Shown: positions 14,340 through 49,229 of the stretch, piece by piece
Position numbering within the stretch: the stretch's first letter is position 1
How the letters are laid out: each line of letters begins with the position of its first letter
IMG/VR virus record: IMGVR_UViG_3300025012_000028
Location: 150,554 to 214,553 of that record
Reading direction: 5' to 3' (one strand)
Length of the DNA: 64,000 nucleotides
Position numbers and translations under genes: made by a program
Notes under the pieces: generated by a model
Seen by the model: only the letters and a program-made list of their open reading frames with translations
What the model was told of the DNA's origin: nothing
The model's database searches: none

Positions 14340-16076
14340 TTAATTAACCATATACCCAAATCCAGATTCATCTTTTAAAAAGTTCCTTGCGTCCAATTGT
14401 TCCCAACCGTCGAACCCGTAGTACGGCTGACTCGTTTTTATTTCAAATCCAATTCCATTTTCCAATTCAAAATCGGAATCAGTTAATAACAACATCACAG
14501 TTTTGAAATTCGTATATACTTTCATTGGTGCCTGATTCCATTTATTATCTACATCATTAATAAATGCCTCATCTTCTAGGTCGTTATATGTTTCCCCTCC
14601 AATTGTTATATCAAAACTTTTCAGCCCACCGTCTAAAGCAGACATCATTTCGTTATATCTGCCACCTTCAATACCTCTCTCCGCTGCCCATCTACATTGA
14701 GTATAAAGATCATCTCCCTCATCTTCCAAAAACTGGAACATATCATCTTCCCAATTTTCTTCATCCTCGTCCGGATATTCTTTTCTAATATACTCTTCAA
14801 CTTTCTTTTCGTCCAACATTTCATAACATTCTCTTATAGTATCATCACTCACTTCTATATCTGGGTCCGAATCTTGGTCTACTATCCATTTGGTTGTATC
14901 GTCACCATAATTTTCAACTAGGTCTTCTAAATCTCTGGCTTCATATATGACTGCAAATTCTTTCTTTTCATCCCACTCTAAAGAATGAAGATCTTTCGAA
15001 ATCCAGAGTTCATTCATTCTCTGCATAAATGAATCGGTTTTTCCTACTTTCTTATAATAATCCATCAAACCCATCAACTCGGGTCGTTGTTCAAATAAAT
15101 CTTCTTTAAATTCATCTGACAAATCTTCGGTACTAAAATCCGAATCTTGTCCATAAGAGGAACGTTCTATCCCTTTGATATAATAACTTTCGGTTCCCTT
15201 GGTTGATGTTACTTCTTTATGGAGCAGCAAATCCAGAATGTACTTGTGGTACTTCTCAACGGGTTTGGTATTTTGTTTGCCCTTCATTTGATATAAGATA
15301 TGATCATCACTACCCATCTCAAAAGTCAGATGGGGTTCCCATAACCACGTAGACGGTTCAGATTTGCGTTTGTTGAGGTATCGGAGGGAAAGTAAGGTAC
15401 TACCATGACTTCCAGTTCCGCAGTGTCCCATTGCCCTACTCTCGTTGCTACAGTAGTTGGTGTTGAGGTCTACCCAATACCAACCGTTCCCATACTCGAT
15501 TATAGGAAAACATCTTTTGTCTGGATAACCTTCTTCATGATCCAATGGTTGTTTGATATACTGAACTGTTCCATCTAACTCTGATGCCCATTCCTTTTCA
15601 ATCTTTTCCATATCGGCAAACACTTCTTCGGGGAATTTACCGGTAGGATTATAATCATCAATCTCTTTTAAGTGAAGATCCAGAAAGTGTTTATATTGAG
15701 TCAATGTTTTTCTAGGTAGAAAATCATTTTGCATTTTACTATCTAATATGTCGGGTCTATCCGCCAGATTAAATTTTTTACATTCGCTTTGTAAAAGTTT
15801 TTTGTAATATTGTTTTATGTTCTGTTCAGCAACTTTATCATCTAGAGTTAAATTGTCTAGTGTCCATGCCATATATATCTGCATTAATTTATTATACCAA
15901 ATAATTCTAAAATTCTTTTTTAAATACTCTGGCGATTGAAGAACATAAGATCTATAATATGTGTCGATTACCGGAGTAACTTTACCCAATTCCAAAACTT
16001 TGGTAAACATCTGCGAATAATCATATGCCTCAAGCAGCAGAGGAGCATGTAAAAAGGTTTTAAAAGAAATCATCAT
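14340..16076 (-). CDS. Putative internal head protein with PcfJ-like central domain
   Basis: Leader MISFKTFL...LLE; E..AMGHC, LLSLR, PHLTFE, QMKGKQN.KP; acidic C-terminus. Confidence 0.6.
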   Translation of the reverse strand: MMISFKTFLHAPLLLEAYDYSQMFTKVLELGKVTPVIDTYYRSYVLQSPEYLKKNFRIIWYNKLMQIYMAWTLDNLTLDDKVAEQNIKQYYKKLLQSECKKFNLADRPDILDSKMQNDFLPRKTLTQYKHFLDLHLKEIDDYNPTGKFPEEVFADMEKIEKEWASELDGTVQYIKQPLDHEEGYPDKRCFPIIEYGNGWYWVDLNTNYCSNESRAMGHCGTGSHGSTLLSLRYLNKRKSEPSTWLWEPHLTFEMGSDDHILYQMKGKQNTKPVEKYHKYILDLLLHKEVTSTKGTESYYIKGIERSSYGQDSDFSTEDLSDEFKEDLFEQRPELMGLMDYYKKVGKTDSFMQRMNELWISKDLHSLEWDEKKEFAVIYEARDLEDLVENYGDDTTKWIVDQDSDPDIEVSDDTIRECYEMLDEKKVEEYIRKEYPDEDEENWEDDMFQFLEDEGDDLYTQCRWAAERGIEGGRYNEMMSALDGGLKSFDITIGGETYNDLEDEAFINDVDNKWNQAPMKVYTNFKTVMLLLTDSDFELENGIGFEIKTSQPYYGFDGWEQLDARNFLKDESGFGYMVN

Positions 16077-16457
16077 TTACCTCAACGTCCCAAGTTTAAT
16101 AAAATCACCCGAATCTAACAGTTCGTGTACTCCGGTTCCATATTTCATCCCAGAATGTTTAACTGCATATTGACTTCCAGATTCCTCTTCACCTATAGTT
16201 TTTGTAAGATACATAGGGGAATCAAATTTAATATTCCAACTATAACCAGTCACCTGATAAACTTTACCAGTCTTATTTGATTTGAATCTATCACCCACTC
16301 CCAAGCGCCATCCTTGGTATGCCTCAATCTTTTCCATCATGTCTTTCACACCAAGCTTAATATCATCCCTCAATTTCTTATGAAACTCCCTTTCGGGTCT
16401 GGTGATAAGAGGAATGGGTTCTTTATCTTCGGTGATAAATTCTTTGAATGAAATCAT
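16077..16457 (-). CDS. Putative internal head protein
   Basis: Leader MISFKEFITE resembles T4 capsid-targeting sequence. Confidence 0.65.
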   Translation of the reverse strand: MISFKEFITEDKEPIPLITRPEREFHKKLRDDIKLGVKDMMEKIEAYQGWRLGVGDRFKSNKTGKVYQVTGYSWNIKFDSPMYLTKTIGEEESGSQYAVKHSGMKYGTGVHELLDSGDFIKLGTLR

Positions 16458-16483
16458 GGAGTTATCCTATATGAATTTTTTAT

Positions 16484-16512
16484 TTGACAATTACGGATTT
16501 CGGAGTTAAAAT
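16484..16512 (+). promoter_or_regulatory. sigma70-like promoter TTGACA-17-TAAAAT, antisense to late operon
   Basis: Near-consensus, intergenic, no credible + ORF downstream. Confidence 0.6.
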
Positions 16513-16571
16513 AATCTTGTCCGTTAGGACATAGACATCTACTGCCTTTTATTATAGGACAATGGACAATC

Positions 16572-17003
16572 CTAGAAATCATCATCTTCATCGGGAGGAA
16601 TGACTTCTACAACATCATATTTCTCACCAATATATTTATTTGAATATAAAAAGTCCTTCATATCTTCTACATCGACCCAACCTAATTTAAGATTGGTGGA
16701 AGTCAGAGTTATAATGCAGCTATACTTTTTAAATTTCTTCATTTCTCCAACAAAGTTAATTTCCAAACACAGAGGTTTTTCTAATTCAAATTTCCGCGCA
16801 ACATCTGTATGTAGAATGGTATCCCCGAAACCATAAACAATTTCACCATCCACAACAACTACTCTCATGATATCCCAACTCTTAACAACCTCTATGGATT
16901 TGATTTCATCAAAGGTGGGATTTTCGAATATAAGTTGTTCCTCACGCTTATACATGTAGGAATCTTTATAATTTTCGGATAAAAATTTTTTGAATGATAT
17001 CAA
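16572..17003 (-). CDS. Putative internal head protein
   Basis: TTG start with GAGG RBS; leader ISFKKFLSE. Confidence 0.6.
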   Translation of the reverse strand: MISFKKFLSENYKDSYMYKREEQLIFENPTFDEIKSIEVVKSWDIMRVVVVDGEIVYGFGDTILHTDVARKFELEKPLCLEINFVGEMKKFKKYSCIITLTSTNLKLGWVDVEDMKDFLYSNKYIGEKYDVVEVIPPDEDDDF

Positions 17004-17216
17004 TGGTTAGTTCCTCGAATGGTTATGTTTACCGTTAGAATGATAATCATTATTAAGGAGTCGTCTCAGTGCAAGATCAAAACGTCTAGCAAGTAAAAAA
17101 TCACACTCAGATATCGACTTGGCCTTTTCTCTTCTCAATCCTTCGATGATTAGTTGTTTCATAACACAATAACCTAAGATGGTAATAACAAAATTATCAT
17201 GTCAGTGGTGCTACTT

Positions 17217-20200
17217 TTATACTAGTGTTAATGTGGTACTCCGCACTGTGCCGTCCGAACCCTTGACTTTTACCGTCAAGGTAGTGTTGTCGGTCAACTC
17301 GAAAGTCATTTCCCCGTTTACTGTTGGTGTTGCCGACGTGAGGGGAAAAGCTGAAACGTAATCCGTTGTAGGGGTGTAGGCTGCTGTACCAAGGTTTGAT
17401 GATTTCACCAGCCCGTTTATTATAAACGTCGAATAAACCCCACCGTCATTAGTGAGTAGATAACCATCGCCGGTCCCTTGATCTTGTTCATACTGGTTAA
17501 TGATAGTTGCCATCATGATGATGCCATCATGAACTGAGACCAAGGAGCCAGAGCCGAACACTGTGGACCCACTTAGACCCGCCCCCGGTGTGGCTTCTCG
17601 TGCCTGAAAGATTGTGCCGACTGCATTGGACGTAGAAACATACCCGACTTGAAGCGGCGTAAAATCAGCATCGGTGTTATTTAGTATCTTATACCACCCT
17701 CCGACCTCAATATTCGTCAAGTTCGTATAAGAAATCGGCGTGCTGGCGAAAATGGCCCTCGATTGCCGTCCAATTCCCTGTTTTGATCTCAGATCGTCAC
17801 CATTGACCCTGAGATTAAGCATATAATAGTTACCAAGAACCACACCGTAACGAACTGCTGGTGTGCCGGAAACATACCCCCCATTGCCATCTACTGTCAT
17901 ATCGAGAGTGCTGGCATACATTCCATAACTAGAGTTGCCCAACCGGAATCCGTGTGAACCGTTCTCTTGTGCTTCTATTGTACCTTGGTGGTTCGCTCCG
18001 GTGAGAATTACCGCACCTTCAAAGTCATTAGCAGCAGTACCGAAATATGGAACAATATCGACAGATGAACCTGTGGTGGAGATGTTGAGCCGTCTAGAAA
18101 GAAAAACTTTGATGTCGGAATACTGAATATTCTTGTTTGCGAATCTCGCCGCCAAACCCCAGTGCATTGCACCGCCAATCTGGATTTTCGACAATTTGCT
18201 ATCGTTGGCCTTGCCGAGGTCCAGCCCCGAACCATCGACCCGCTGAACAATCAGCCCCTCAATTACTAGGTTGCTAGCGTACCCTTCATCGTTACTAACA
18301 ACCACGCCGTGACCACCACTCAACAGATGCGCTCCAGTGCCGGAATCGCGGATATCGTCGGCTGCGAACTCCTCGCGTAGGCCGTACACGCCTCCAGCGG
18401 CCCCCGATCTGTGTCCCGCGAAGAATTCAACTCTGGTGTCGGAAAGCGTCCGGGAATAAGTGTTGTCCACACCTTGGGCAATGTATATGCCGCTCCCCAC
18501 CGAGAACAACCCCCCACCAGCCTGACCATCGACCGTAAGCCCATGGATAGACCCGTACGCGCCGGTCCAGCGAATGACATAAAGCAAGGCGTCAGCGGCG
18601 TCATCTCCGGAAGGTTTGAATCGTATCTTACTGGACGCTGAACCATCCCCGATGAGATGCACTTTTGATTTCAACTCAACATCACGCCACCACGTAACCC
18701 CGCGCGGGACAAAAACGGAGCCGCCGTTTAGCGCGGCTTGCACATCAATCGCGGCTTGCGCGGCTGCCGAATCGTCCGAGCCGTCATATTTCGCGCCGAA
18801 CCATTTAACGTTGACCGCCCCGGTGTAATCCCTCAGCCATGCAGCCGAACCGTCGCCGCCTGTCGGCACAATGACGGTGCCGTTGTTGTCGGTGTAGGTG
18901 CCCGGTGAAGCACCTGAAACCCAACGGAAATGACCTCCCCCACCATCTCCTGCCGAAGTGTGATTCTCAAGGTATATAGATGGCACAGTGCCGTTCGTGA
19001 TGCCTCGTAACGCCGTGAGGTTTGTCACGACCAAGCCATCCATAGCATCTTGCACCGCCTTGACCGCTGCCGAGTTCGCCGCCGTGGTTGTGGAGTTAGA
19101 AGTAGTGGAGGATGAAAGCTCCGATGTTGATACAATATCCCCGAACTTTAAACCACCCACAACTTTCGATGGGTCGAAATTGTGTGGACCCACAAGTACC
19201 GGTTCTAGTGCTGCCGCCACATCAACTTCAGTAGTAGGAGGATATGTCTCTGAGTTAATTTTTCGGAAGGATAAGATTGTAGTTCGTGAAGCATTACCAT
19301 CTATCAAAAGATGTTGTGCATCGGGCGCTGCCGCAGCACCTATGGTGTCCTGTCTTGACATTCCCGAAATAATACTGTTACCTTCCCCACCTGAAATACG
19401 GTAGCTCCTGCCGGGAAACTCAGCAGACCTGTTAATGTTGGCTTCCACACCGGACCCACTCAGAGTTACGGCGTTAGCACCGTCCAACCAAAAACCTAGT
19501 CCGGCCTGTTCGATATATGTGCCGTTTATATTGACTGTAGTTGGACCATATAGATAGACCCCAAGGATAATATCTCGTACACTAGAACTAATAAAAGTAT
19601 GACCGTCACCACCATCTATAAATATTCCGGCATAACCACCTTGAAAAATTTTGACCTGATCATAGGTACAAAATGCACCAGTACCCACATAAAGTGATAT
19701 ATCATTGAGGTAACGTAGATGAACATTACGTACAGTCAAATTAGTAAGTATTTCTTGGGAGCTAACATGAATATCAATACCTTTATTCCCCGTGCCGACC
19801 CATTGACCCGGACCATCTATCCCAAAATTGGATAGATATACCCAATCTGTATCGACACCTAACAATGCTGGACCATCAAAGTCAGCCTTGATAAGTCCTG
19901 AGTCCAATGGTGACACACCGAAAATACGATGTCCGTCGCGCAGTGTAAGGGGTGCTGATATTTTACACCATGCCGGAAGTAGTATACTAGTTTCTGAGTC
20001 AAGTACAGCCTGTATTGCAGCTCTATCATCCGTTATACCGTCACATACAGCGCCTCTTGTTTTAACATTGACCGCATGTGTGTCTATCTGATCCTGCACC
20101 GCCTTGGTTAAAGAGTTAATTGAAGTTTTAACCGAATTACCATTTTGAACAATAGGTACTTTTTCTAAACCAGATAGTGGTATCGTAGCTTCATTAAATT

Positions 20201-20219
20201 CAGATATTTTCTTTGCCAT
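17217..20219 (-). CDS. Tailspike with two tandem pectate-lyase-like beta-helix modules
   Basis: KKIS head; VNVKTRGAVCDG.TDDRAAIQA and VNVKWFGAK.DG.DDSAAAQAA; tail-fibre repeat linker. Confidence 0.85.
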   Translation of the reverse strand: MAKKISEFNEATIPLSGLEKVPIVQNGNSVKTSINSLTKAVQDQIDTHAVNVKTRGAVCDGITDDRAAIQAVLDSETSILLPAWCKISAPLTLRDGHRIFGVSPLDSGLIKADFDGPALLGVDTDWVYLSNFGIDGPGQWVGTGNKGIDIHVSSQEILTNLTVRNVHLRYLNDISLYVGTGAFCTYDQVKIFQGGYAGIFIDGGDGHTFISSSVRDIILGVYLYGPTTVNINGTYIEQAGLGFWLDGANAVTLSGSGVEANINRSAEFPGRSYRISGGEGNSIISGMSRQDTIGAAAAPDAQHLLIDGNASRTTILSFRKINSETYPPTTEVDVAAALEPVLVGPHNFDPSKVVGGLKFGDIVSTSELSSSTTSNSTTTAANSAAVKAVQDAMDGLVVTNLTALRGITNGTVPSIYLENHTSAGDGGGGHFRWVSGASPGTYTDNNGTVIVPTGGDGSAAWLRDYTGAVNVKWFGAKYDGSDDSAAAQAAIDVQAALNGGSVFVPRGVTWWRDVELKSKVHLIGDGSASSKIRFKPSGDDAADALLYVIRWTGAYGSIHGLTVDGQAGGGLFSVGSGIYIAQGVDNTYSRTLSDTRVEFFAGHRSGAAGGVYGLREEFAADDIRDSGTGAHLLSGGHGVVVSNDEGYASNLVIEGLIVQRVDGSGLDLGKANDSKLSKIQIGGAMHWGLAARFANKNIQYSDIKVFLSRRLNISTTGSSVDIVPYFGTAANDFEGAVILTGANHQGTIEAQENGSHGFRLGNSSYGMYASTLDMTVDGNGGYVSGTPAVRYGVVLGNYYMLNLRVNGDDLRSKQGIGRQSRAIFASTPISYTNLTNIEVGGWYKILNNTDADFTPLQVGYVSTSNAVGTIFQAREATPGAGLSGSTVFGSGSLVSVHDGIIMMATIINQYEQDQGTGDGYLLTNDGGVYSTFIINGLVKSSNLGTAAYTPTTDYVSAFPLTSATPTVNGEMTFELTDNTTLTVKVKGSDGTVRSTTLTLV

Positions 20220-20819
20220 TTAGATAAACCCCTTTGAAGCAATAAAATATGCGTCCGTCAAATCCCATCTACCACTACTCATAGAGTATTTAGAAAATTC
20301 ATTTTGAATGTTTTCAGGAAGCTTACAAAAAGTTCTAAATTTTATGTTGGTAGATAAGATCAAATCAATATTATCTTTAGAAAATTGTAGTTTATCTTTT
20401 CTAGTCATTTCTTTATAACCGGCCTTTTCTTTGAGAGAAAGCAATTCTTTTTTTGTAAGACCTAACTCTTTATTCTCTACCTTGGAAAATAGTGGTGACC
20501 GCCATTCCATCACTTTAAAAACCTTCAAAGGTATAGTGGGAAAATCTTGTTTAATTTTGATACGCAAATACCAGTTCTGCCCCGCAATAAGATCCTTTTC
20601 GCCGGAAGGAGAATCATATGATAAATCTTCTAACGTCAACATATCCGGTTTGCAAAATGAAATGAAACTACAAATTTCATTTATATTATGAATTAATAGT
20701 GCTTCATCATTCAAATCTTTAGATGATGATTGAATGAGTTTATAATCAAACAAATTTTTATCTTCTAATAAACAAAGTCCAGAAGATCGTAATGACAAAT
20801 CTATACCTAAAATCCTCAT
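20220..20819 (-). CDS. ruvC: RuvC-like Holliday junction resolvase
   Basis: ILGIDLS..SSG, LTLED, DLTDAYFIA. Confidence 0.75.
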   Translation of the reverse strand: MRILGIDLSLRSSGLCLLEDKNLFDYKLIQSSSKDLNDEALLIHNINEICSFISFCKPDMLTLEDLSYDSPSGEKDLIAGQNWYLRIKIKQDFPTIPLKVFKVMEWRSPLFSKVENKELGLTKKELLSLKEKAGYKEMTRKDKLQFSKDNIDLILSTNIKFRTFCKLPENIQNEFSKYSMSSGRWDLTDAYFIASKGFI

Positions 20820-21373
20820 ACTCTTATGTCTACCATATTAAGTTTTATTTCCGTATCTACTTCTTCTGATAATACTTGATCAATCATATTGCATCTTACT
20901 GCCCATTTACTTTGTACATATGAGAAAATTGATCCGATCATTTCTTTAAATTCAACAAAAGATAGTTGTTGTGTATTATTATCTGCATCACGTATACTCA
21001 TAATTTGATCTGGATTTAATTGCCAAACCATCAAAAGTTTTACCCAATCTATTTGTGCTTCATTTGTAATATCTATATTAAATGTTTTGTTTGTAGATAA
21101 TTCAATTTGTAACTTATAAAGTAATGAATCGATATAATTGGTTTTAATGTTGACCACTTTTTTATTTTTTAAAATATTTAAAGGAACCGGACTGGGGATA
21201 AATGGTTCTTTAACTCCGTTCTTAAATATCCATTTACCTTGTTCAGAAATAAATGATCCCCAATCTTCATCAGATATATTTATTGCTTCTATTGGAATGT
21301 TCGTTGGATCATGTGTATCATCTGAAAAAAAAGCTTGTGGATGACCATCTTCATCAAAAATACCAAATTTCAT
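20816..21373 (-). CDS. Tail fibre assembly chaperone-like (DUF4376-like)
   Basis: FF...H..IP.EAI.ISDE.W; RDADN...LS; follows fibre gene. Confidence 0.7.
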   Translation of the reverse strand: MKFGIFDEDGHPQAFFSDDTHDPTNIPIEAINISDEDWGSFISEQGKWIFKNGVKEPFIPSPVPLNILKNKKVVNIKTNYIDSLLYKLQIELSTNKTFNIDITNEAQIDWVKLLMVWQLNPDQIMSIRDADNNTQQLSFVEFKEMIGSIFSYVQSKWAVRCNMIDQVLSEEVDTEIKLNMVDIRV

Positions 21374-21382
21374 AAAAACTCC

Positions 21383-22528
21383 TTAATACCCTATCGCAAA
21401 TATTGTTGCCCATGAATTTACTGTATCATTACCAGCAATTGATTGTCTTGTCACAACCACAGAACTTGTTGTGGGGGTTCCAATTATCTGGAATACAACG
21501 TCTCCACCTACTGTATATGAAGCTATCGAAGTTCCTACTATTGCAGTCAGACAAGCATTAGGAAAGGCAATAGGAAATGTGATTGTCTGTGCTGCCGATT
21601 CGCCCCCAGGTGTTACCTCCGCTGAAACACACCACTGTAATATAACACCGCTTGGAAGTTTCTGGTAACCAAAATTACCCACAACATCTTTCTGAAAATC
21701 TGTCAAATCGAGTGCATCAGATACCATTTGAAAATCTGAGATTGGTTTGCCATTAAAAAAATTAGCATCCAATCCAGATCCCACACCATCAACACTTTTA
21801 ATTTTTGTCAATAATGATGTTGGTGTATCAGCCAAAGCAATAGGAACCCAACTTGAACCATCACCAGTTATTTTCCACGAATATATGCCGATAGGATCAT
21901 AAAATGAATCATGAGAATACTTGACATTCTCTAAAAAGAAATGTTTATCCAATATATCAAATAATTCTAAACTTCCTTTTGATAACGAAAGTTTTTTGAT
22001 TGTAATTTCATTATCACCACTATAATTATTTTTAATCTTAAATGAAATATTGGAAAAGACTTCTGAGGTTTTAAATAAGAAATAATTATCGTATGATGTA
22101 ATTAAATCAGTGGGTGTAAAAGAAGTAGATAGAATACTGTTGTTAGATAAATTTATAAACCCAGAAGAGTTGGTAAGTTCAAATCCACAATTTTGTGATG
22201 CTTCTATACTTACAACAAGAAGATAAGTTGTAGATGGTTCTAACTTGTCTGTAATATCCTGTGAAATATATTGGTTTGTTGTTCCTGAAATAAAATTTAC
22301 CACAGAATAATATCCATCGATGTCAATATCAACAGAACCTGTGTCCGCTGCCACACTCCACCCAAAAGGTAGTGTATTACCATTTAAAAAGAATTTAAGT
22401 TTAGAGTTGATTAATAAATTTTGTAAAGAAGTTTTAGCCAAACCAGTAACTATTTGATTTAGATTATTTTTCAATCCAATTAATGATGTGGTCTGTGTGG
22501 ATAAATAATTCTCATTTATTTTTGACAT
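21383..22528 (-). CDS. Tail fibre protein
   Basis: LLTKIK.VDG.GSGLDA; C-terminal GYQKLPSGVILQW, ITFPIAFPN, FAIGY. Confidence 0.8.
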   Translation of the reverse strand: MSKINENYLSTQTTSLIGLKNNLNQIVTGLAKTSLQNLLINSKLKFFLNGNTLPFGWSVAADTGSVDIDIDGYYSVVNFISGTTNQYISQDITDKLEPSTTYLLVVSIEASQNCGFELTNSSGFINLSNNSILSTSFTPTDLITSYDNYFLFKTSEVFSNISFKIKNNYSGDNEITIKKLSLSKGSLELFDILDKHFFLENVKYSHDSFYDPIGIYSWKITGDGSSWVPIALADTPTSLLTKIKSVDGVGSGLDANFFNGKPISDFQMVSDALDLTDFQKDVVGNFGYQKLPSGVILQWCVSAEVTPGGESAAQTITFPIAFPNACLTAIVGTSIASYTVGGDVVFQIIGTPTTSSVVVTRQSIAGNDTVNSWATIFAIGY

Positions 22529-22538
22529 ATAATCCCCA

Positions 22539-40784: not shown

Positions 40785-40788
40785 AAAC

Positions 40789-40953: not shown

Positions 40954-40990
40954 ATAGTTCTCCTTGGGGAAATTGTACTACTTATATTTA

Positions 40991-42373
40991 TCAATCCCCA
41001 AAATCAAATAACGCAATTGCTTCTTCACTGGCATCTCTTTTTTGTTGTTGTGCTTTCATTTGATCTTTGATGTGTAAAGGAATCTCTTGTTGATCGGCTG
41101 AAAGGTTGTGCATACGCATTTTATCATAATCAATTCCGATGGTATAAATCTTACCCTTGTTCTTTCCAAAACGAGTTTTCATGTTCTTGACAAGATACTT
41201 GCCTTGTTCTCTCAATTCGTCCGTCTGTATCAGCGCCCCTGCCCAATCCCCCGTCTGACTGATAGCATAAGCTTCACCAACATCTTCAAGGTCTGCTGCT
41301 TCTTTCTTTGCTTTAGCACCACGATTGAACTGTGCATTAGACAGCAGAGCATAGTTCATTTCCATTGCCAACGCTCTTTGTTCTTCTGCCACGTTCTTCA
41401 CATAGATCGGTGATCCTGCCTGAGAAGGGGGAAGTTTACTGGAAGCGAAGTTGTTGATACCATCAAGGATCACAACCACCGGAACAAAGTTCTGTTTCAG
41501 TTTCAGTTCCATCAACAGGTTTTTAACGTGAAGCGCACTGGCAGCACCAGTCGGAAATTCTTTGACCTTCAGCCGTCCATGTGCCTTGGAACAAAGTTCT
41601 TTAAATCTAGAATTGAAAAGGTTCTTATCCAAAGTTTTATTCAGACTATCCATTCCAATGTCCAACAGGTTTGCATCATTCTTTTTTAAAATCTCTTCTT
41701 CACTTTCCTCACCAGTAACATAAAGAACATCAATACCCAACCTTACTAAAGCAGATGCACAATGACAAAGAATAATAGTCTTACCCACATTGGTTGATGC
41801 CATAAATAGAAACATTGCTTTCCTGACAAGACCACCACCCATAGCAACATTGAGCAGTTCTATATCAAGAGGAATTTTATCATGTTCATTGAAATAATTG
41901 TCCCTGCGCTTTTCAGCATCATCAAAATAGTCATGACCAATTTCGACCACAAACTGAATTGCCATTGCTTCTTTGATCTTTTCTATCTTGGTTGCCTTAT
42001 CTGGCTTACCTTTCTCTAATGATTCGATGAAATCATAGGTTGCAATTTCAATTGCCCTGTTGCGAACCCATTCTTCAGTTTCATCTATTAGCAGTTGTTC
42101 ATCATCAATCAGGTCTGTTTTCCTGAGACTATTAAGTTTATCTTTGATGATCTGTGTATCTTCCACCGAAATATCTGTATCGGTATCAATGGTCAATTTT
42201 AAATTTGGGTATGTGGGAATCTTATTATATTTGTCTTGGTAATCTTTAATCTTTTTGAAAAGAAACTGATCCTCTTTGGCGGTGAAATAATCTCTCTTAA
42301 GGTGTGGGAAAACGATGCGATAAAAGTTGGAGGATTTAATCAAGTAAACAAAAATATTATCAATCAGCATCAA
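40991..42373 (-). CDS. gp41: Replicative helicase (DnaB-like)
   Basis: GHDYF, A.TNVGKT, KEFPTG, AEE.RALA.E, QFNR, KTRFG. Confidence 0.93.
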   Translation of the reverse strand: MMLIDNIFVYLIKSSNFYRIVFPHLKRDYFTAKEDQFLFKKIKDYQDKYNKIPTYPNLKLTIDTDTDISVEDTQIIKDKLNSLRKTDLIDDEQLLIDETEEWVRNRAIEIATYDFIESLEKGKPDKATKIEKIKEAMAIQFVVEIGHDYFDDAEKRRDNYFNEHDKIPLDIELLNVAMGGGLVRKAMFLFMASTNVGKTIILCHCASALVRLGIDVLYVTGEESEEEILKKNDANLLDIGMDSLNKTLDKNLFNSRFKELCSKAHGRLKVKEFPTGAASALHVKNLLMELKLKQNFVPVVVILDGINNFASSKLPPSQAGSPIYVKNVAEEQRALAMEMNYALLSNAQFNRGAKAKKEAADLEDVGEAYAISQTGDWAGALIQTDELREQGKYLVKNMKTRFGKNKGKIYTIGIDYDKMRMHNLSADQQEIPLHIKDQMKAQQQKRDASEEAIALFDFGD

Positions 42374-42426
42374 TTACTCCATAAACTAATAAAGTACCAA
42401 ATTCTATTAACGGTTCAATATTGTCT

Positions 42427-42816
42427 TTAGAAATCATGGAATCTCTCCTGTGCTATATCCACGACCAGCGCAACCGCAATCTCTTTAGAGACTTCCGACA
42501 CTATCTGTTTATATATTTCAAATTTATCGACATTCCCCGATAAACGGTCCACCTTTATCTGACCCTTTATTTCTTTTCCATTCAGGTTTACAATGTATCT
42601 ACAATTCCTTTTGAACGAAATATAATCATCATAAATATAACCACAAACGTTCAGAATGTTATTATTGATTTGAAATGAATCTAGAATGGAATTATAAGCT
42701 TTCTCTTTCATCTCTTCATAGAGTTTAATACTTTCATCCGTGGGAGCACGGTTGATTGTAACACTCTTTTCATATGGTATATAATCTGTTCTTGAGTTGT
42801 AATGTTTATCGAACAT
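42427..42816 (-). CDS. Hypothetical protein
   Basis: ORF track; RAPTDES motif. Confidence 0.55.
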   Translation of the reverse strand: MFDKHYNSRTDYIPYEKSVTINRAPTDESIKLYEEMKEKAYNSILDSFQINNNILNVCGYIYDDYISFKRNCRYIVNLNGKEIKGQIKVDRLSGNVDKFEIYKQIVSEVSKEIAVALVVDIAQERFHDF

Positions 42817-43440
42817 TTAGAAATGCTCCTCTTCTTCATTGGTAAAAGCTTCAACTGCCCTCGCCAGTTCGGGAGGATTGATAATATCTTCCATTCTCTT
42901 ACAAGAAGGGCAATTATCTTTATTGGGTTCTCCGTGATGGTTTTCACACCATGTCACATAACAACGAATTTCTTCAGGTATCCCATTCCAAATTTCATGC
43001 TTTTTAATTTGTGTAATCGGGAATATGAGCTTGGGCAATTCGGATCGACATAGCCCTTGCATTGAATTGTAGATGGTTTTAATTTCATCCAGAAACGAAA
43101 TTGCATCATCATTCATTACATAACCAATCGCAACCTCATCAACATCTTGAGGGATGATATAAGGCAACATTAAGAACAGAGGGGGATAAGACAGACACCA
43201 ATTATTATTACTGCACCTGACTGAGAAATCGATTGGTTCACCGATATATTCAAAGTTCCACTTCTCAAAAAACGGTCGTATTTTGGAGATTGCTTCTAGT
43301 TCTCGTTTGGTCTGTTCACCATTACCAACCAGATTTATATAACCCGCCTTGACTTTATGCCCTTCTTTTAAAAGACGCCAAATCAAATAGGTACTATCAA
43401 CACCACCACTCCAAAGAACAAATTTAGTTTTTTCTTTCAT
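42817..43440 (-). CDS. queC: QueC-like PP-loop ATPase
   Basis: LWSGGVDST; C-terminal WC...CPSC. Confidence 0.6.
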   Translation of the reverse strand: MKEKTKFVLWSGGVDSTYLIWRLLKEGHKVKAGYINLVGNGEQTKRELEAISKIRPFFEKWNFEYIGEPIDFSVRCSNNNWCLSYPPLFLMLPYIIPQDVDEVAIGYVMNDDAISFLDEIKTIYNSMQGLCRSELPKLIFPITQIKKHEIWNGIPEEIRCYVTWCENHHGEPNKDNCPSCKRMEDIINPPELARAVEAFTNEEEEHF

Positions 43441-43804
43441 TTTGATTGTCTTGCCTCTCTATATTGTTCTATGTATTTTTGATAATCTTCAAGGTTCTTA
43501 TTGTTGAGTTCAAATAACATATGAAAAGCATTACCCACTCTCAAAGGAGGACCAAGAGGAGGTTTTGAAATATCGATAATATTTTCTCCTTTAGGATCAA
43601 ATATTCTCAATTTCATTTCATCTTCCTTACTTCTTTACGTTTAACATCTCGTTTTTCTTTGGTATCATATAGACACGGTTTACCATCTTCCATTACATGG
43701 TGCCACGCTCCATCAACTAATACATCCAAACCATAACTAACTGTCATTGTGGTTGTATTCAACCAATCGTTCGTTTTTGTTCTCATATTTTCTCCTTAAA
43801 AATA

Positions 43805-43856
43805 AATAAGAGCTATCAATATGTTTCATGATAGCTCTTATTATTTCGGAAGTCTA
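43805..43856 (-). promoter_or_regulatory. Terminator hairpin overlapping promoter TAGACT-17-TATCAT
   Basis: 14-bp IR 43805-43818/43829-43842. Confidence 0.7.
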
Positions 43857-43873
43857 TTAATTTTTATGTGAGT

Positions 43874-44143
43874 TTACGCTAATCTGTCCAGAAGATATTT
43901 AGTTTTAATTTTCCCATATTTTTGGTATTCACCAATCATCTGTTTCATCAAATCCAACTTTTCCTGTTCTTCGGGAGTCATAGAATCGAACTTCACAATT
44001 GCCTTGGAAATCTTTTTGAACACGTCTGATATTACTCCTTCTGTTAGAGTTTTGTCGGATGTGATTCTTTTAATTTCTTTAAGGTAGAAATTTAAATCTT
44101 CAGTTTCAGTTAATAGATGTAAAGTCTTCTGGAAATTGTTCAT
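43874..44143 (-). CDS. Putative internal head protein
   Basis: Leader MNNFQKTLHLLTE. Confidence 0.55.
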   Translation of the reverse strand: MNNFQKTLHLLTETEDLNFYLKEIKRITSDKTLTEGVISDVFKKISKAIVKFDSMTPEEQEKLDLMKQMIGEYQKYGKIKTKYLLDRLA

Positions 44144-44485
44144 CTATTTTTCTTCCTTGGGAACTTTACCAACCTCAAAAATCCCCTCGTTGTCAGTTGC
44201 CGTGCTCAACTTGAAAGCTTTGATGATGTCAGCAGCTTTACACCCCTTCAGTGGTTTGCACATAGCTGCAAGCTTCTTGAGGGTACCATAACCGGCAGTT
44301 GGATTTTCTTTAATATAAGCCTTTTGAACATTTCTATATTGGTCGGCAGTAGCCCTTTCCTTGAACTTGAGAATGGTTTTACCATCGGGAAGCACAACCC
44401 CATTCTCTTCTCTTGATTCTACAATCACTTCTGTTTCTTTCGCTTCAGTAAGCGTCTTCAGAATTCGGTTAAAATTGTTTTCCAT
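44144..44485 (-). CDS. Putative internal head protein
   Basis: Leader MENNFNRILKTLTEA; own late promoter. Confidence 0.6.
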   Translation of the reverse strand: MENNFNRILKTLTEAKETEVIVESREENGVVLPDGKTILKFKERATADQYRNVQKAYIKENPTAGYGTLKKLAAMCKPLKGCKAADIIKAFKLSTATDNEGIFEVGKVPKEEK

Positions 44486-44510
44486 TTATGTTTCTCCTTG
44501 AAAGTTTATT

Positions 44511-44690
44511 TTATTTATAATACCAACTAATCTTTACTAATGATCCATCAACTTTATCTACAAAACTACCCAAGTAATCATCTTGTTGAAGCGTTCCAGA
44601 ACGTATGATAGGTTTGATGGAAATTGAATCTGGAGGTCGCACATTGACACAACCAGAAAGAAAAATACATATTAAAATCATTTTAAACAT
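44511..44690 (-). CDS. 59-aa late lipoprotein
   Basis: Hand translation MFKMILICIFLSG|CVNVRPP...ISWYYK; lipobox LSGC. Confidence 0.7.
   Translation of the reverse strand: MFKMILICIFLSGCVNVRPPDSISIKPIIRSGTLQQDDYLGSFVDKVDGSLVKISWYYK
44512..44519 (-). promoter_or_regulatory. T4-type late promoter TATAAATA
   Basis: Exact consensus upstream of 44485 start. Confidence 0.75.
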
Positions 44691-44730
44691 AGAAATCCCT
44701 CATTACGTTTATTTATAATGAGGGATTTCT
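44691..44730 (-). promoter_or_regulatory. 15-bp RBS-occluding hairpin with late promoter TATAAATA (44710-44717) in loop
   Basis: agaaatccctcatta-taaataaacg-taatgagggatttct-ATG on minus strand. Confidence 0.8.
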
Positions 44731-44734
44731 TTTC

Positions 44735-45940
44735 CTATTCTGTTACTTCTTCTACTTCAAGATCATCGGCAATCCCTTCGGAAGCTGAACAATAATTAAA
44801 CTTGGCTCTCATATAATCGGCCAATCCATGTTTCAAAAACTCTTCCCAAAATGCGGGAGTCATTTTCGCCTTGGTCATAAGATCATCTTTCTTATGAGCT
44901 AAGGAAGGTATTTTTTCAGGATTGATCTTATAGGAACTCTTTTCCTTCAGAAAGATTCCTTCTTCCTCATAACAGAATTCGAACAGACCGGAATAAGGTG
45001 TAAGCCCTTCTTCAAAATCAATATTGAACTTGATTTTAGTTTTCTCTTTTGCGGTCCTACATTTGACATTGGTGCTTGTGATCCTCGCCCCAATTACTTC
45101 ATCTTCTTTATCATTCTTAACCTGTGCTTTTGAGAAATCACTAATGATGGAGGAATTGTAAAGCGAACCTTCACCACCCGATATCACCTTACCACCATAC
45201 CCACCAATCTGAGAATATACATGGTTGATGGGAACGATAGGAACATTTTTGATACCAGCTTTGAGTGTTACTGTCCTGAACAATGCGCGGAGTGCCTGTT
45301 GCTTTGTCATATCCCTTGAATCAGTTCCAGTGGTTTTATCCGCAAGTTCTTTCTTCGAACTGATATTACCAATGGAGTCGATACCAATAAAAACTTTATC
45401 ATCGGGATCGAGTTCATCGATTATGTTGATCAGTTGTGTATTAAGTTCTTCAATGGTAGGAACCGGAATGAACAGCATGTTCTCAGTATCAATTCCACGT
45501 TTCTTCAGATCTTCTTTGGAGTTGTTGGACATCTCAGTTTCAAATAGAACGAAGAAGTATCCAAGGTCGCGCTGTGCGTGTTTAGCAGTCTCTAACATGA
45601 GATAAGTCTTACCGACCGAGTTCAGACCCGCCAATTGCCACACCCTACCAGACGGCATACCCTTATACGGATCGCCACTAATTTGAGCATTGAAAAGATA
45701 ATTACCAGTATTAATCCAGTCACGGATGGGATACTTATCTATTTCGTTGTCGCCCATTAACTGCGCGTACTCAGAACCAGACACATGTTTCAGACGTTCA
45801 CCAAAAGACATTGCTTTCTTTTTAGCTTTTTCTTCGGCAGAATTGTCTTTGAGAATTTTCTTCTCTTCTTTTGAGAGTTTGATGTTGTTTTCTAATTTGA
45901 TTTTAAGTTCTTTCAACACGTCTTCTGAAACAATAGCCAT
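44735..45940 (-). CDS. uvsX: RecA-like recombinase
   Basis: TG.Y.FNA.ISG, AGLNSVGKT, IDSIGN, DMT, INHVY, GG.G..Y. Confidence 0.92.
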   Translation of the reverse strand: MAIVSEDVLKELKIKLENNIKLSKEEKKILKDNSAEEKAKKKAMSFGERLKHVSGSEYAQLMGDNEIDKYPIRDWINTGNYLFNAQISGDPYKGMPSGRVWQLAGLNSVGKTYLMLETAKHAQRDLGYFFVLFETEMSNNSKEDLKKRGIDTENMLFIPVPTIEELNTQLINIIDELDPDDKVFIGIDSIGNISSKKELADKTTGTDSRDMTKQQALRALFRTVTLKAGIKNVPIVPINHVYSQIGGYGGKVISGGEGSLYNSSIISDFSKAQVKNDKEDEVIGARITSTNVKCRTAKEKTKIKFNIDFEEGLTPYSGLFEFCYEEEGIFLKEKSSYKINPEKIPSLAHKKDDLMTKAKMTPAFWEEFLKHGLADYMRAKFNYCSASEGIADDLEVEEVTE

Positions 45941-46162
45941 TCACACTTCTCCTTTAGTATTTCTCGTCAAGTAAAAAACCACACCGGTTGGTGCTGATAA
46001 TGGTTCTATTCCAACCAATTCTTTCGCATTTAAACTAGGATAAACTCTTTTGCCTAATAAAGTGAAGAATCGTTCTACAAATTTCTTATGGTACTTTTTC
46101 CTTATTCGTTTCTTTTTATGAGTGATGAATTTGAAATAATTTATGTGGCGGTTTCTTTTCAT
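45941..46162 (-). CDS. Small basic protein containing gp23 major-capsid-like segment
   Basis: KRVYPSLNAKELVGIEPLSAPTGVVFYL vs T4 gp23 RRAIPNLIAFDICGVQPMNSPTGQVF. Confidence 0.6.
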   Translation of the reverse strand: MKRNRHINYFKFITHKKKRIRKKYHKKFVERFFTLLGKRVYPSLNAKELVGIEPLSAPTGVVFYLTRNTKGEV

Positions 46163-46362
46163 TCGTCACAAACTCCCTTCCATGCATCATAAAGTTCATA
46201 CCAATCTTCTTTCAACTCATAATATCTAGGCGCAGTTTCCCCACCAAATTTTTCATTCAGGAACTTGACTATATGTTCCCCATAGAACTTTCCCACATTT
46301 TCAACAACCAGTTCATCACTGACAGAATCTCTATCGAAATTATCCTTTCCCACAATTTTCAT
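46159..46362 (-). CDS. Hypothetical protein
   Basis: ORF track. Confidence 0.6.
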   Translation of the reverse strand: MKIVGKDNFDRDSVSDELVVENVGKFYGEHIVKFLNEKFGGETAPRYYELKEDWYELYDAWKGVCDE

Positions 46363-46595
46363 TATTTCATTACTCCTTTGGTAAATGGAAAGATGAATTC
46401 TGAATGATATTCATCACTCAACTTTGTGGGTTTCTTGCCTATTTCTATATCAAACACTTGTGGAAGATGTCTAAATGAATCCCACATATCTGTTATAGAT
46501 AACAGAAATTGTTGAACCTCTTCGGTATTATTGAAAATTCTAATGGAGGTTTGATGAATTGTTCCTAAATGTCCAAATGGTGTGAGCATTAACAT
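46362..46595 (-). CDS. Hypothetical protein
   Basis: ORF track. Confidence 0.5.
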   Translation of the reverse strand: MLMLTPFGHLGTIHQTSIRIFNNTEEVQQFLLSITDMWDSFRHLPQVFDIEIGKKPTKLSDEYHSEFIFPFTKGVMK

Positions 46596-46795
46596 TATTT
46601 GTAATTCTCCAAATTATCTTTCATTTCCTGATGAAATATACTTCCACTCGCAATGTAAGTGGATTTGTTTGTGTCCAGATATTTATCCATCTCTCTGATC
46701 AGTTTTATTGCAGCATGTAGTCTTAATTGTGAATCTGTTGTGGTCATGGGAATGTATGGTGCATAAACATATCCCGGTTCAAAATCTGTTTTCAT
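46595..46795 (-). CDS. Small protein with gp23 C-terminal-like motif
   Basis: EPGYVYAPYIPM resembles gp23 (D/E)AG.(Y/F)Y(A/C)PY. Confidence 0.45.
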   Translation of the reverse strand: MKTDFEPGYVYAPYIPMTTTDSQLRLHAAIKLIREMDKYLDTNKSTYIASGSIFHQEMKDNLENYK

Positions 46796-47140
46796 TTAAA
46801 GATCCTCTTTTTCAAACATAAAAGTTTTGAATGGAGTTACCACGCTGCACCTTTCCTGTTCCAAGTTCTTCATCAGAATTTTGGCGAGTGTATATGCCTT
46901 TTCGTTGATGTTGTTGGCGGTATCTGGGAACCGAGGATAGTTGATTAGACCCACAATAATTCCCGGTTCATCACCTTCCACATAAACAAAATTGGTAAGA
47001 GTAATTGTAAGACCAAGTTTGACCTTATCACAATAATCCTTACACATTTTAAATGCCATTTCAAATGGCATCACCTTTTCCGAATAACCAGAACGCAGAC
47101 CCATATAAATTTTTACTTCATGTGTATTACATTTTTGCAT
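46796..47140 (-). CDS. Conserved phage hypothetical protein
   Basis: G.EPG..VGLINYPRFP motif. Confidence 0.65.
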   Translation of the reverse strand: MQKCNTHEVKIYMGLRSGYSEKVMPFEMAFKMCKDYCDKVKLGLTITLTNFVYVEGDEPGIIVGLINYPRFPDTANNINEKAYTLAKILMKNLEQERCSVVTPFKTFMFEKEDL

Positions 47141-47402
47141 TATCAGTTCCTTTATAGATTAGATTTAGAACTATATGATCAATGTGTTTACTAAGTGTGA
47201 TGATATCTTGAGCAAGTTTTTCTTCTTCGAATATATTACATTCTCTCCACAATACACATTTTTCTTTACCATCATAACCACAAAATCCACACCACTCATT
47301 GGTATCGTTGAGACATTCTTTTGAGGGCGGCATATGCCCAAAACATCGTTTAGGATATATACCGTTGGTAAGATTTTGAATGTCCTCTAAAGAATAGTTC
47401 AT
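47127..47402 (-). CDS. Hypothetical Cys-containing protein
   Basis: ORF track. Confidence 0.5.
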   Translation of the reverse strand: MNYSLEDIQNLTNGIYPKRCFGHMPPSKECLNDTNEWCGFCGYDGKEKCVLWRECNIFEEEKLAQDIITLSKHIDHIVLNLIYKGTDNAKM

Positions 47403-47572
47403 TACATATTCTCCATAAGAGTTTCACTTACACTTTCCTTATAAGATGCCATTACTTCATTCCTACCCCATCCAGTTTTAACTTGAAGCTTTTGAGCAAA
47501 CACTTCCTCAATTCGTTTAAGCAATTCTTTAGTGTTCATAAAAAATATCTCCTATAAATGTTAAATATCATA

Positions 47573-48859
47573 TCACGGAAAAACAGGATCGATTTTCGAT
47601 AAAATAGATTTAATTTGGTCAACTTCTTCTACACCATAATCGTGGTATTGTTCCATAAGATCGAATATGACACCACAAGATTGAAACGCCCATTTTCTAG
47701 AAAATGGGTATCCTTTCCCGTCGTTGTCGGAATCTACATATCTCCACACTTCCTGTAAAAAGGTTTTAAAATCCGTCTTAGAAGCGTTTCGTAAAATGCT
47801 TCGGTGATCGCCAATAAAAGTTAGTGTTGAGTTATGAGATGGTGGTACTAATCCAGTTCTCAAAAAGTTTAAAATTCTAGACATGTCAGATTTATCTCTG
47901 AATAACAATTCATTTATTTCGTCTAATGATCTGACAGCTTTAGTGAGATAGTCTTTATTGTTGAGTTTATCTATAACAGTAAAGGCATCTTTGGAAAGAA
48001 AGAACGCTTGCATAGGTTCGGATGGATGGATATAACCACGTCCCGATTTATCTGCAAAACCAGTATAGCCACAGGTTCTCAACACCCAATTCCACTTGGA
48101 TGAAACCACATTACCATATGACGCAGTAGCCACAAACATCGCCACAAAGCGCGACATCTGCCAAAAGGCCATGATAGGATTTTCTTCTTTCCTAGTCTCC
48201 AAACACACAGCAACCAAAACCATCCAACATTCAGAAACGAATTTATCGATCAATTTTGGATTTATAATATATTCATAATTTTCTGAAATGAAAAATTTAC
48301 TTTTGAAATTGTCCCTAAAATCCCTGTATATCTCATTGCTCGGATATTCATTGATCGTGAATAATCTCTGCAACAAACCATGCATGTCCATAAAACGATT
48401 TCCAGCTTCAAATTCTTTGGCGCGTTTCATGAAGATGTTTCTGAGAGTTCTGTAATCCGCATCATAATTATTACTGGTGTAGTTGGAATACATATCATTC
48501 ACAAACCCATCGGAGTCTTTCGCTTTCAGAACCCACATAAAAGGTCTATCAGCAGCGAAAGGAAGACCCCTTAAAGACTTCGTTCTGTCTACCTCATATT
48601 TCTCCCACGCCTCTACAAGTGGATAACAGTAAATGCCCAATGGTGTGTTGTAATTCGATCTAGGATTTATACCTATCTTTGTCTGACCTCTGTTCTTCTG
48701 TTTTAAATTTGATCGTTGATGATTAACCAAATCATCCGTAAACCCAATGTAAATGGTCGGATCGTTCTTATACTTCTTCAGATATTCGTATGCGGAAATC
48801 TTGGGATTAGAATCGGGGTGGGATCTTGCTTCAGCTATAAATTCCTTGAATCGTATCAT
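47573..48859 (-). CDS. Putative internal head protein, possible ADP-ribosyltransferase-like fold
   Basis: Leader MIRFKEFIAE; TPLGIYCYP, GY.G..D, EP.QA; late promoter 48947-48954. Confidence 0.6.
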   Translation of the reverse strand: MIRFKEFIAEARSHPDSNPKISAYEYLKKYKNDPTIYIGFTDDLVNHQRSNLKQKNRGQTKIGINPRSNYNTPLGIYCYPLVEAWEKYEVDRTKSLRGLPFAADRPFMWVLKAKDSDGFVNDMYSNYTSNNYDADYRTLRNIFMKRAKEFEAGNRFMDMHGLLQRLFTINEYPSNEIYRDFRDNFKSKFFISENYEYIINPKLIDKFVSECWMVLVAVCLETRKEENPIMAFWQMSRFVAMFVATASYGNVVSSKWNWVLRTCGYTGFADKSGRGYIHPSEPMQAFFLSKDAFTVIDKLNNKDYLTKAVRSLDEINELLFRDKSDMSRILNFLRTGLVPPSHNSTLTFIGDHRSILRNASKTDFKTFLQEVWRYVDSDNDGKGYPFSRKWAFQSCGVIFDLMEQYHDYGVEEVDQIKSILSKIDPVFP

Positions 48860-48946
48860 CACAATCCTTCCTGAAAACATTCATCACATTGTTCGTCTTC
48901 GATATGATCATGTTTGAAATATTCTCTACCACACACTTTACAGATG

Positions 48947-48954
48947 TATTTATA
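48947..48954 (-). promoter_or_regulatory. T4-type late promoter TATAAATA
   Basis: Exact consensus. Confidence 0.6.
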
Positions 48955-48965
48955 TATGTGTTTTT

Positions 48966-49229
48966 TCATTCCTCTTTGAGTTTAGAAACTTTAATGTTCC
49001 TGATATTGAAAGCACCATCCCCATCGATTCCAAAGGATTTCTTTTGATCGACATCCCCATCAGGATCTACGATAACCTCAAAAGAATGTCCACCATCACT
49101 ATTGCTCTTGATGTGCTCCAACATCCTCTGCAACGAGTTTTCACTATCACTTACCTGAATGGTGATGATGGTATCACCCTCCGATTTATACTCATTCAGA
49201 ATGTTCAAAATGTCTTGATACTTCTTCAT
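48966..49229 (-). CDS. Putative internal head protein
   Basis: Leader MKKYQDILNILNE; GGAGG RBS; late promoter 49255-49262. Confidence 0.6.
   Translation of the reverse strand: MKKYQDILNILNEYKSEGDTIITIQVSDSENSLQRMLEHIKSNSDGGHSFEVIVDPDGDVDQKKSFGIDGDGAFNIRNIKVSKLKEE

Follow-up and report, generated by a model that had tools for sequence, protein, structure and literature searches.

The final 64,000 nt (bases 150554-214553; hereafter the window) of a 214,553-bp virus record from IMG/VR (IMGVR_UViG_3300025012_000028) encode seven proteins that begin with short, similar N-terminal leaders ending in glutamate. We consider it probable, with good though not full confidence, that these shared N-termini are T4-type capsid-targeting propeptides, and that the seven proteins are part of a 28-member set delivered from the phage head. 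A preliminary description of this DNA had picked out the seven open reading frames (ORFs) and their N-termini, and we found all of them in place, all on the minus strand. Its count of seven proved too low for the genome and its two leader subtypes became three (types A, B, and C): a scan of every start codon genome-wide yielded 28 leader-bearing ORFs, all on the minus strand, which amount to 6,952 residues and 9.7% of the genome. Coordinates below refer to the window unless they are given as genome positions.

A leader set resembling T4 propeptides

Type A, M-I-S-F-K-x-[FY]-[LI]-x-E, accounted for 20 of the ORFs (17 canonical leaders and three variants, two of them long forms ending in LVE and LLE) and was found on proteins of up to 801 amino acids (aa). 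The type-A genes lie mostly in tandem clusters, at genome 57.6-59.8, 82.9-88.6, and 138.2-146.9 kb and at window 14.3-17.0 kb. Type B, an extended form ending in L-L-x-E, was carried by four ORFs, three of which are in the window, while the fourth (MNNFIKTLNLLQE) belongs to an unrelated 62-aa ORF at genome 107680-107868. The four type-C ORFs (M-[SNK]-I-[LF]-x-[KS]-I-L-x-E), one of which encodes a 710-aa protein, form one cluster headed by a late promoter at genome 110832-114303.

The leaders are far beyond chance. When a position matrix built from the canonical type-A leaders was applied to 4,926 candidate starts, 17 starts scored 19.6-30.7 bits and the two long variants 15.5 and 9.0 bits, and the best remaining start reached 1.5 bits. 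The pattern I[SRT]FK.F[IL].E occurred 12 times in the six-frame translation, every time directly after a start codon, and neither this pattern nor the type-B pattern was found in 20 locally shuffled genomes.

We compared the leaders with those of the T4 internal proteins (IPs), taken from NC_000866, where IPII and IPIII start with MKTYQEFIAE and IPI with MKTFKEFTSTTTPVSTITE, each followed by Ala. Six of the 10 residues of the window leader MIRFKEFIAE, which is likewise followed by Ala, are the same as in IPII/IPIII, and these include the last five. Leaders of the MISFK type are similar to the beginning of IPI, whose long form has a parallel in the leader of 15 residues on a 577-aa window protein. 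According to a review of work from the Black laboratory (PMC9026906), amber-suppressor substitutions in the T4 IPIII leader showed that targeting depends mainly on residues 4 and 7, whereas residues 8 and 10 govern processing; Asp at position 10 prevents processing and leaves targeting intact, and the first ten residues of this leader suffice for incorporation. All 17 canonical leaders have F4 and E10, with either F or Y at position 7 and either L or I at position 8, and positions 6 and 9 are free to vary; the four constrained positions coincide with the targeting and processing positions of T4. Type A shows every feature of such a leader, namely an aromatic residue at position 4, an aromatic or hydrophobic residue at position 7, I/L at P3, and Glu at P1. 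In type B, positions 4 and 8 and the terminal L-x-E fit, with I or T at position 7, and the corresponding residues of type C are L or F at 4 and I at 7. Through this match to the IPI, IPII, and IPIII propeptides at the positions mapped by mutagenesis, the proposal that the leader is a T4-type capsid-targeting sequence (CTS) is supported, and every prediction of it that could be tested at the sequence level was borne out.

Homologues of the two largest tagged window proteins, of 577 and 428 aa, bear on where such a propeptide would end. For the 577-aa protein there were 34 metagenomic relatives, and the conserved part starts right after the leader (LLE, then AYDYxQMF); for the 428-aa protein there were 72 further metagenomic homologues, with the conserved part again starting right after the Glu, at ARRNPEQNPKISAYE. 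The leaders of these homologues vary by lineage (MKRFKEFIAE, MKSFKKFISE, MLSYKEYLDE, MKRYKPLFE, and MKLLEVLPLLE), and the conserved sequence always begins after the Glu. This coincidence, read from alignments, is the strongest indirect evidence for a propeptide boundary. The AlphaFold2 (AF2) models of both proteins start with a short separate helix that is followed by a low-confidence linker.

The leader is also present in other phages. An exact-pattern scan with the back-translated leader located type A in at least 119 IMG/VR stretches, for which we would expect ~1-10 stretches by chance (a rough estimate, not a computed figure), and in 111 of the 119 matches listed the leader stood at an ORF start. 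Several IMG/VR loci among the matches listed have 3-8 tagged ORFs, unrelated downstream sequence, and a consensus specific to that genome, with L019 and L064 (MKTFKQFIxE) and L121 (MITFKQFLxE) carrying 7-8 tagged ORFs within ~10 kb. A genome-specific consensus is the pattern expected from leaders that co-adapt to each phage's core. Peptidase_S77, the family of the T4 prohead protease gp21, scored above cut-off in six of the 10 leader-bearing records checked (4/4 records that are at least 90% complete and 2/6 fragments). One strict leader pattern was counted 14 times in this genome, 10 times in a 118-kb record that is 52% complete, four times in one complete genome, and once in each of three others; large repertoires are thus not universal, nor are they unique to this phage.

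Head genes, late promoters, and a proposed delivery route

The 214,553-bp record is ~90% complete with a G+C content of 36.5%, and its sequence indicates a phage of a distant T4-like lineage. No cultured phage has a UvsX more than 38% identical to the one encoded here, the closest being those of cyanomyoviruses, and megablast of window 14.3-20.2 kb against GenBank phages returned no match. The major capsid protein shares 28% identity with T4 gp23 (E 7e-44), the portal matches T4 gp20 at E 8e-59, and a gp24-like vertex protein matches PF07068 at 1.5e-40. The gp21-type prohead protease (Peptidase_S77, PF03420; genome 67720-68406) scored 60.2 bits, above the curated cut-off. Of the set that delivery would require, the gp21-type protease and gp23-type capsid are therefore present, and the scaffolding core is placed by position. 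The [LI]-x-E cleavage specificity appears to be retained in the phage's protease, because the protease itself starts with MAELLIE (MNEPQLLIE in T4 gp21), the gp24-like protein has FLKE at residues 15-18, and the capsid protein has YLME at residues 49-52, just before its conserved core.

Two minus-strand ORFs in the window also resemble head proteins. A 140-aa ORF (52772-53194) gave a second, sub-threshold PF03420 match (22.8 bits, E 5.5e-6, profile positions 57-144); it adjoins a gp46/SbcC-like gene and is distant from the head genes. Directly downstream of uvsX, a 73-aa ORF (45941-46162) contains 28 residues that are 43% identical to T4 gp23 residues 100-127 (BLAST E 5e-4), the conserved N-terminal capsid motif, and it may be a capsid-protein fragment or mimic.

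The octamer TATAAATA behaves as a real T4-type late promoter element in this genome, judging from its placement. Of its 69 copies in the genome, 26 are followed at a distance of 10-45 nt by the start of a gene on the same strand, compared with 1-6 of 21-55 copies for eight control octamers of the same composition, and it precedes the capsid, protease, and portal genes. It also lies 25-28 nt upstream of four tagged genes (those heading the clusters at genome 144090 and 146913, and those starting at window 44485 and 49229) and 37 nt upstream of the gene for the 801-aa tagged protein. According to the preliminary description, the tagged genes in early regions carry their own copies of this element, and minus-strand boxes were indeed found exactly at 44512, 48947, and 49255. 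These boxes span 44512-44519 (26 nt upstream of the ATG at 44485), 48947-48954 (88 nt upstream of the ATG at 48859), and 49255-49262 (25 nt upstream of the ATG at 49229), and each of the three ATGs has a Shine-Dalgarno sequence. The tagged genes at 43.8-49.3 kb are surrounded by genes for replication and recombination (UvsX, NAD-dependent ligase), which agrees with a need for late promoters of their own. That the remaining tagged genes of the window end a late operon, as had also been suggested, is plausible: the 14.3-17.0 kb cluster follows a gene for a 1000-aa tail-fibre-like protein with no convincing terminator between them, and read-through remains a proposal. Scans for sigma-70 promoters and terminators gave results not above shuffled expectation.

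Another minus-strand ORF in this region, of 59 aa (44511-44690) and located between uvsX and the type-B genes, has a lipoprotein-type signal (a hydrophobic stretch ending in LSGC) and its own TATAAATA 19 nt upstream, at 44710. A 207-aa minus-strand ORF at 42817-43440 has a PP-loop, SGGVDS, that by eye resembles QueC-type enzymes, and it may be related to 7-deazaguanine DNA modification.

Taken as capsid-targeting propeptides, the leaders suggest the following route. The tagged proteins would be made late, from TATAAATA promoters, and the amphipathic leader of 10-15 residues would bind the scaffolding core of the assembling prohead, so that the protein becomes enclosed. The gp21-type protease would then cut after the Glu of [LI]-x-E, leaving the mature protein free inside the head, from where it would be carried out with the DNA when the next cell is infected and act ahead of any phage gene expression. 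We infer core binding, cleavage, copy number, injection, and cargo functions from sequence.

Tagged proteins and their predicted folds

The cargo had been described as unrelated, and this held for most of it: all-against-all BLAST of the 28 mature parts gave only four weak or paralogous pairs. Two tagged proteins outside the window match ART-PolyVal, an ADP-ribosyltransferase (ART) domain, in Pfam, one at 3e-19, where the domain is fused to a GNAT acetyltransferase, and the other at 1e-7. For the seven window proteins, Pfam, PHROG, and NCBIfam gave no family. The cargo folds that are recognisable point to enzymes that modify host molecules, and the anti-defence role put forward in the preliminary description is only one of several that the cargo could have.

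The leader that comes nearest in the window to the MKTYQEFIAE of IPII/IPIII is that of the 428-aa protein (47573-48859, minus strand, as are all seven), which has the type-A sequence MIRFKEFIAE at 48830-48859 and scored 24.0 bits. In its AF2 model (predicted local distance difference test score, pLDDT, 81), an alpha/beta core carries a helical insertion and is followed by a tail of helices at the C-terminus. Matches to ART-PolyVal-like proteins were obtained in BFVD (the best being from a Yersinia phage, E 4.7e-3, TM by target 0.54), AFDB (E 0.26-0.5), and the ESM Atlas (rows 3, 4, 7, and 10), and the model also weakly matched a pre-ejectosome chain of cyanophage A4 (Foldseek E 4e-3; VIA Z 7.0, residues 32-304). 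When the 428-aa family was aligned with the genome's own ART-PolyVal protein using hhalign, one short motif aligned, with a probability of 6%, and there was no match to Pfam PF18760. From the model, we regard a divergent ART-PolyVal-like fold as probable for the mature part. At genome 142505-144090 (L006 5505-7090, minus strand), a tagged 170-aa ORF and an overlapping untagged 378-aa ORF resemble the N- and C-terminal motifs of this family (GIYxYPL and GY.G...EP.QA.FF), and together they look like a split or frameshifted paralogue.

The 577-aa protein (14340-16073, or 16076) begins with M(M)ISFKTFLHAPLLLE and has the long type-A leader MISFKTFLHAPLLLE, encoded by codons 16029-16073. By analogy with the other leaders, the second of the adjacent ATGs at 16076 and 16073, which gives MISFK, is the likelier start. 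Foldseek comparison of its AF2 model (pLDDT 86) with AFDB returned PcfJ-like proteins at E 2e-4 to 3e-4, and 6/33 of its homologues match Pfam PcfJ (PF14284; best E 1e-4), with no match for the 577-aa protein itself; on this basis the mature part is probably PcfJ-like. A MYST-acetyltransferase assignment was set aside, as the Foldseek PDB matches behind it were weak (probability at most 0.6). When profiles of the 428- and 577-aa families were searched against PDB sequences, nothing significant emerged, and Foldseek against the PDB gave no match at E at or below 0.001 for either AF2 model.

Two smaller type-A genes complete the 14.3-17.0 kb cluster. The 126-aa protein (16077-16457) starts with MISFKEFITE (16428-16457; 27.8 bits), and the acidic 143-aa protein (16572-17003) starts at a TTG with (M)ISFKKFLSE (16974-17003; 28.0 bits), preceded 8 nt upstream by a GAGGA Shine-Dalgarno sequence. 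Atlas searches of the 126-, 143-, and 113-aa proteins gave sub-threshold leads only; those of the 126-aa protein were weak DUF1653-like shape matches, and its nearest named feature, to be taken as a lead only, was an IpIV internal head protein cluster (0.72).

The three type-B genes of the window encode proteins of 113, 89, and 87 aa. The 113-aa protein (44144-44485) has the leader MENNFNRILKTLTE (44444-44485), and three metagenomic homologues (65-82% identical) retain a type-B leader. The gene for the 89-aa protein (43874-44143; leader MNNFQKTLHLLTE at 44105-44143) is probably co-transcribed with its upstream gene, because its start directly follows the stop codon of that gene. In the 87-aa protein (48966-49229; leader MKKYQDILNILNE at 49191-49229), the mature part is a ~65-aa domain that we found in 375 representative proteins at E at or below 1e-3. 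This domain occurs in larger phage proteins of the polyvalent type, beside NUDIX plus DUF2213, InPase, or PBECR3, and many of the small homologues start with a short [LI]-x-E leader of their own.

Elsewhere in the genome, proteins of 176, 801, and 309 aa (L003 2479-3009, L004 4165-6570, and L006 3489-4418) have a common domain that begins just after the leader and contains the motif YH[YFH]T...L.SIL. BLAST relates them at E 2.5e-11 and 3.6e-4, and for one of them there is a Pfam match to Tox-ART-HYD1 at E 0.022; as a lead only, they may be further ADP-ribosyltransferase-like cargo of the HYD1 type. The 801- and 309-aa proteins have canonical leaders, and the 176-aa protein, with a doubtful MTLFEQLIQD, was left out of the inventory of 28. 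A 188-aa type-C protein (genome 111596-112162; L129 7596-8162, minus strand) gave a borderline match to Pfam YscJ/FliF (24.3 bits against a cut-off of 24.4, E 3e-5). We dropped a kinase-like assignment made by eye for a 226-aa tagged protein (genome 146233-146913), as it found no support in Pfam or in a PDB sequence search. Three ORFs, at L006 7105-8079 (plus strand), genome 104531-105340 (minus strand), and genome 109705-110802 (plus strand), have GIY-YIG-like N-termini by motif reading only and resemble Seg-type homing endonucleases; one is inside the largest cluster of tagged genes, on the opposite strand, and another adjoins the type-C cluster.

Alternative explanations and known systems

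Other T4 substrates of gp21 also start with short [LI]-x-E leaders, namely gp24 (MAKINELLRE), gp22 (MLKEQLIAE), gp67 (MEGLIE), and gp21 itself (MNEPQLLIE). The leaders could accordingly mark proteins that help to build the prohead core or scaffold and, with propeptides recognised by the protease, are then degraded or expelled, like T4 gp22, gp67, and gp68, with no effector delivery. In keeping with this, type C includes a 165-aa protein with an isoelectric point (pI) of 4.1 and an 88-aa protein with a pI of 11.2, which are core-like compositions, and among the window proteins there are several small ones that lack an enzymatic fold. We nevertheless regard this explanation as unlikely, given that the type-A leaders match the IP targeting sequence specifically and are found on ART-PolyVal, GNAT, and PcfJ-like proteins, which have no evident use in a scaffold, and that the tagged genes are scattered outside the head-gene cluster with a cargo that is diverse and differs between phages. 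The case for packaging is built from sequence, and a conserved gene start could affect translation, so we also considered that the shared N-terminus serves a purpose unconnected with the capsid, as a tag for a phage chaperone, a degron, a signal for localisation or secretion, or an enhancer of translation initiation. Lacking both a hydrophobic core and a lipobox, the leader is not a Sec/Tat signal; it is near-identical to the T4 targeting sequence at the mapped residues, co-occurs with gp21-type proteases, and always ends in the protease motif, at which the conserved domains begin. Third codon positions vary, which makes selection at the mRNA level unlikely as well, and altogether such a purpose seems to us very improbable.

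The last explanation we weighed was that the leader is a by-product of recombination, in which a DNA cassette repeated at the starts of genes would promote the shuffling of modules and the peptide itself would be functionless. T4-type phages do shuffle genes in hyperplastic regions, and the tagged genes lie in tandem clusters with homing-endonuclease-like ORFs among them. However, nucleotide identity between leader genes was 0.70 over the 30-nt leader and fell to background in the flanks (0.31 in the 30 nt upstream and 0.29 in the 30 nt downstream), and within the conserved leader codons positions 1 and 2 were 0.86 identical compared with 0.54 for position 3. Synonymous positions are thus far less conserved than non-synonymous ones; the Phe-4 codons TTT and TTC are used 8:9, and Leu-8 is encoded by six codons. 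The longest exact DNA shared between leader genes is too short for homologous recombination, and there are no long identical stretches around the starts. Since the flanks are at background identity and third codon positions are variable, selection acts on the leader peptide and not on the DNA, which rules out a recombination cassette or an mRNA element. We rejected the DNA-repeat explanation on the flanking identity and the codon-position test, and would give it almost no credence.

Several observations weigh against propeptides that deliver cargo into the head. BLAST with T4 gp22 gave no gp22 homologue in the genome, and the scaffold (genome 66960-67757) was assigned by position alone, between the protease and capsid genes. 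The resemblance to the T4 IP leader is less close in types B and C than in type A, which makes the analogy weaker for them. Part of the set, in particular the type-C proteins of acidic or basic composition, may belong to the core or scaffold and be degraded instead of delivered. With 28 species competing for the same core sites, the copy number of each would be modest. The 126-, 143-, 89-, and 113-aa window proteins have no fold assignment; because five of the seven window proteins lack a recognisable fold or family, that these five are effectors is something we infer. The 428-aa family appears, on our reading of the alignment, to be missing the first His of the ART-PolyVal motif, so its fold may not be that of an active ADP-ribosyltransferase, and TATAAATA at 48947 is less certain as the promoter of its gene because 88 nt exceeds the usual 16-41 nt. 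Finally, the phage is known from an uncultured IMG/VR record alone.

In T4, only a handful of injected proteins are known (IPI, which acts against GmrSD, and Alt). Injected proteins act before phage gene expression, which makes them prime candidates for proteins that redirect host transcription or counter the first lines of defence, restriction among them. Here, a recognisable label marks 28 candidates in one genome and turns the question of what a capsid contains into a sequence search, and the label is common in environmental phage contigs. This suggests a defined candidate list for screens against defence systems, as well as natural leaders for loading foreign proteins into T4-like capsids, and it links ART-PolyVal and other polyvalent-protein domains to the T4 CTS delivery route. 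If large sets of individually tagged, head-delivered enzymes are widespread among uncultured T4-like phages, M-x-x-[FY]-[KQ]-x-[FY]-[LI]-x-E together with a gp21-type protease would be a general key to thousands of injected effectors in metagenomes.

The leaders share with the T4 IPI, IPII, and IPIII propeptides a length of 10-19 residues, an aromatic residue at position 4, F/Y at position 7, I/L at position 8, Glu at the cut site, and the existence of short and long forms. Also as for the T4 IPs, the leader is common to unrelated mature proteins, the genes are probably late (here judged by promoter motif) and are scattered outside the head cluster, and a gp21-type protease and gp23-type capsid are encoded. 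T4 has three IPs plus Alt, in contrast with the 28 tagged ORFs and 9.7% of the genome in this phage, and the T4 IPs are small, basic, and DNA-associated, whereas many of the cargo proteins here are large, neutral or acidic, and predicted to be enzymes. BLAST of the tagged proteins against T4 IPI-III found no homologue. The literature covers the CTS, IP polymorphism among T-even phages, and their anti-restriction role (PMC3012670, PMC9026906, PMC13326640); in the openly accessible literature, with subscription-only papers outside the search, we found no repertoire of this size and no such leader in non-T-even phages.

T4 Alt is an ADP-ribosyltransferase that is delivered from the head and has host proteins as its targets when infection begins (PMC5512222). 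Like this packaged and injected enzyme, two tagged proteins are predicted ARTs by Pfam, and one window protein is probably ART-like by fold. Unlike Alt, which belongs to the R-S-E (Alt/VIP2) clade, the ARTs here match ART-PolyVal of the HYD2 clade, which is not known in an Alt-like packaged context according to a study of polyvalent proteins (PMC5512222). Among giant phages (SPN3US and phiKZ-like phages), two reports describe many head-internal proteins that are matured by a T4-like, gp21-related protease and ejected into the host (PMC7411985, PMC10052503). Maturation by a protease and ejection from the head are also what we propose here. SPN3US and phiKZ-like phages are not known to have a short uniform leader of the T4-IP type, their propeptides being long and diverse.

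Polyvalent proteins are the other point of comparison. Iyer et al. (2017) predicted that they are packaged and injected with the DNA as effectors (PMC5512222), and the same role is proposed here for proteins with related content, namely ART-PolyVal, GNAT, and the ~65-aa module that occurs beside NUDIX, InPase, and PBECR3. In polyvalent proteins such domains are joined in one giant polypeptide, often anchored on MuF or portal, whereas in this phage every domain is encoded separately and has a leader to itself. We are evenly divided on a broader proposal, that about a tenth of the genome is given over to individually tagged head-delivered enzymes, including several ADP-ribosyltransferase-like ones, both here and across a broad range of T4-like phages that are uncultured, as an "unbundled" counterpart of polyvalent proteins. 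The mechanism we propose is the known one of T4; what would be new is the size of the set, its presence in a very distant T4-like lineage, and a cargo of domains otherwise found in polyvalent proteins, each of them tagged.

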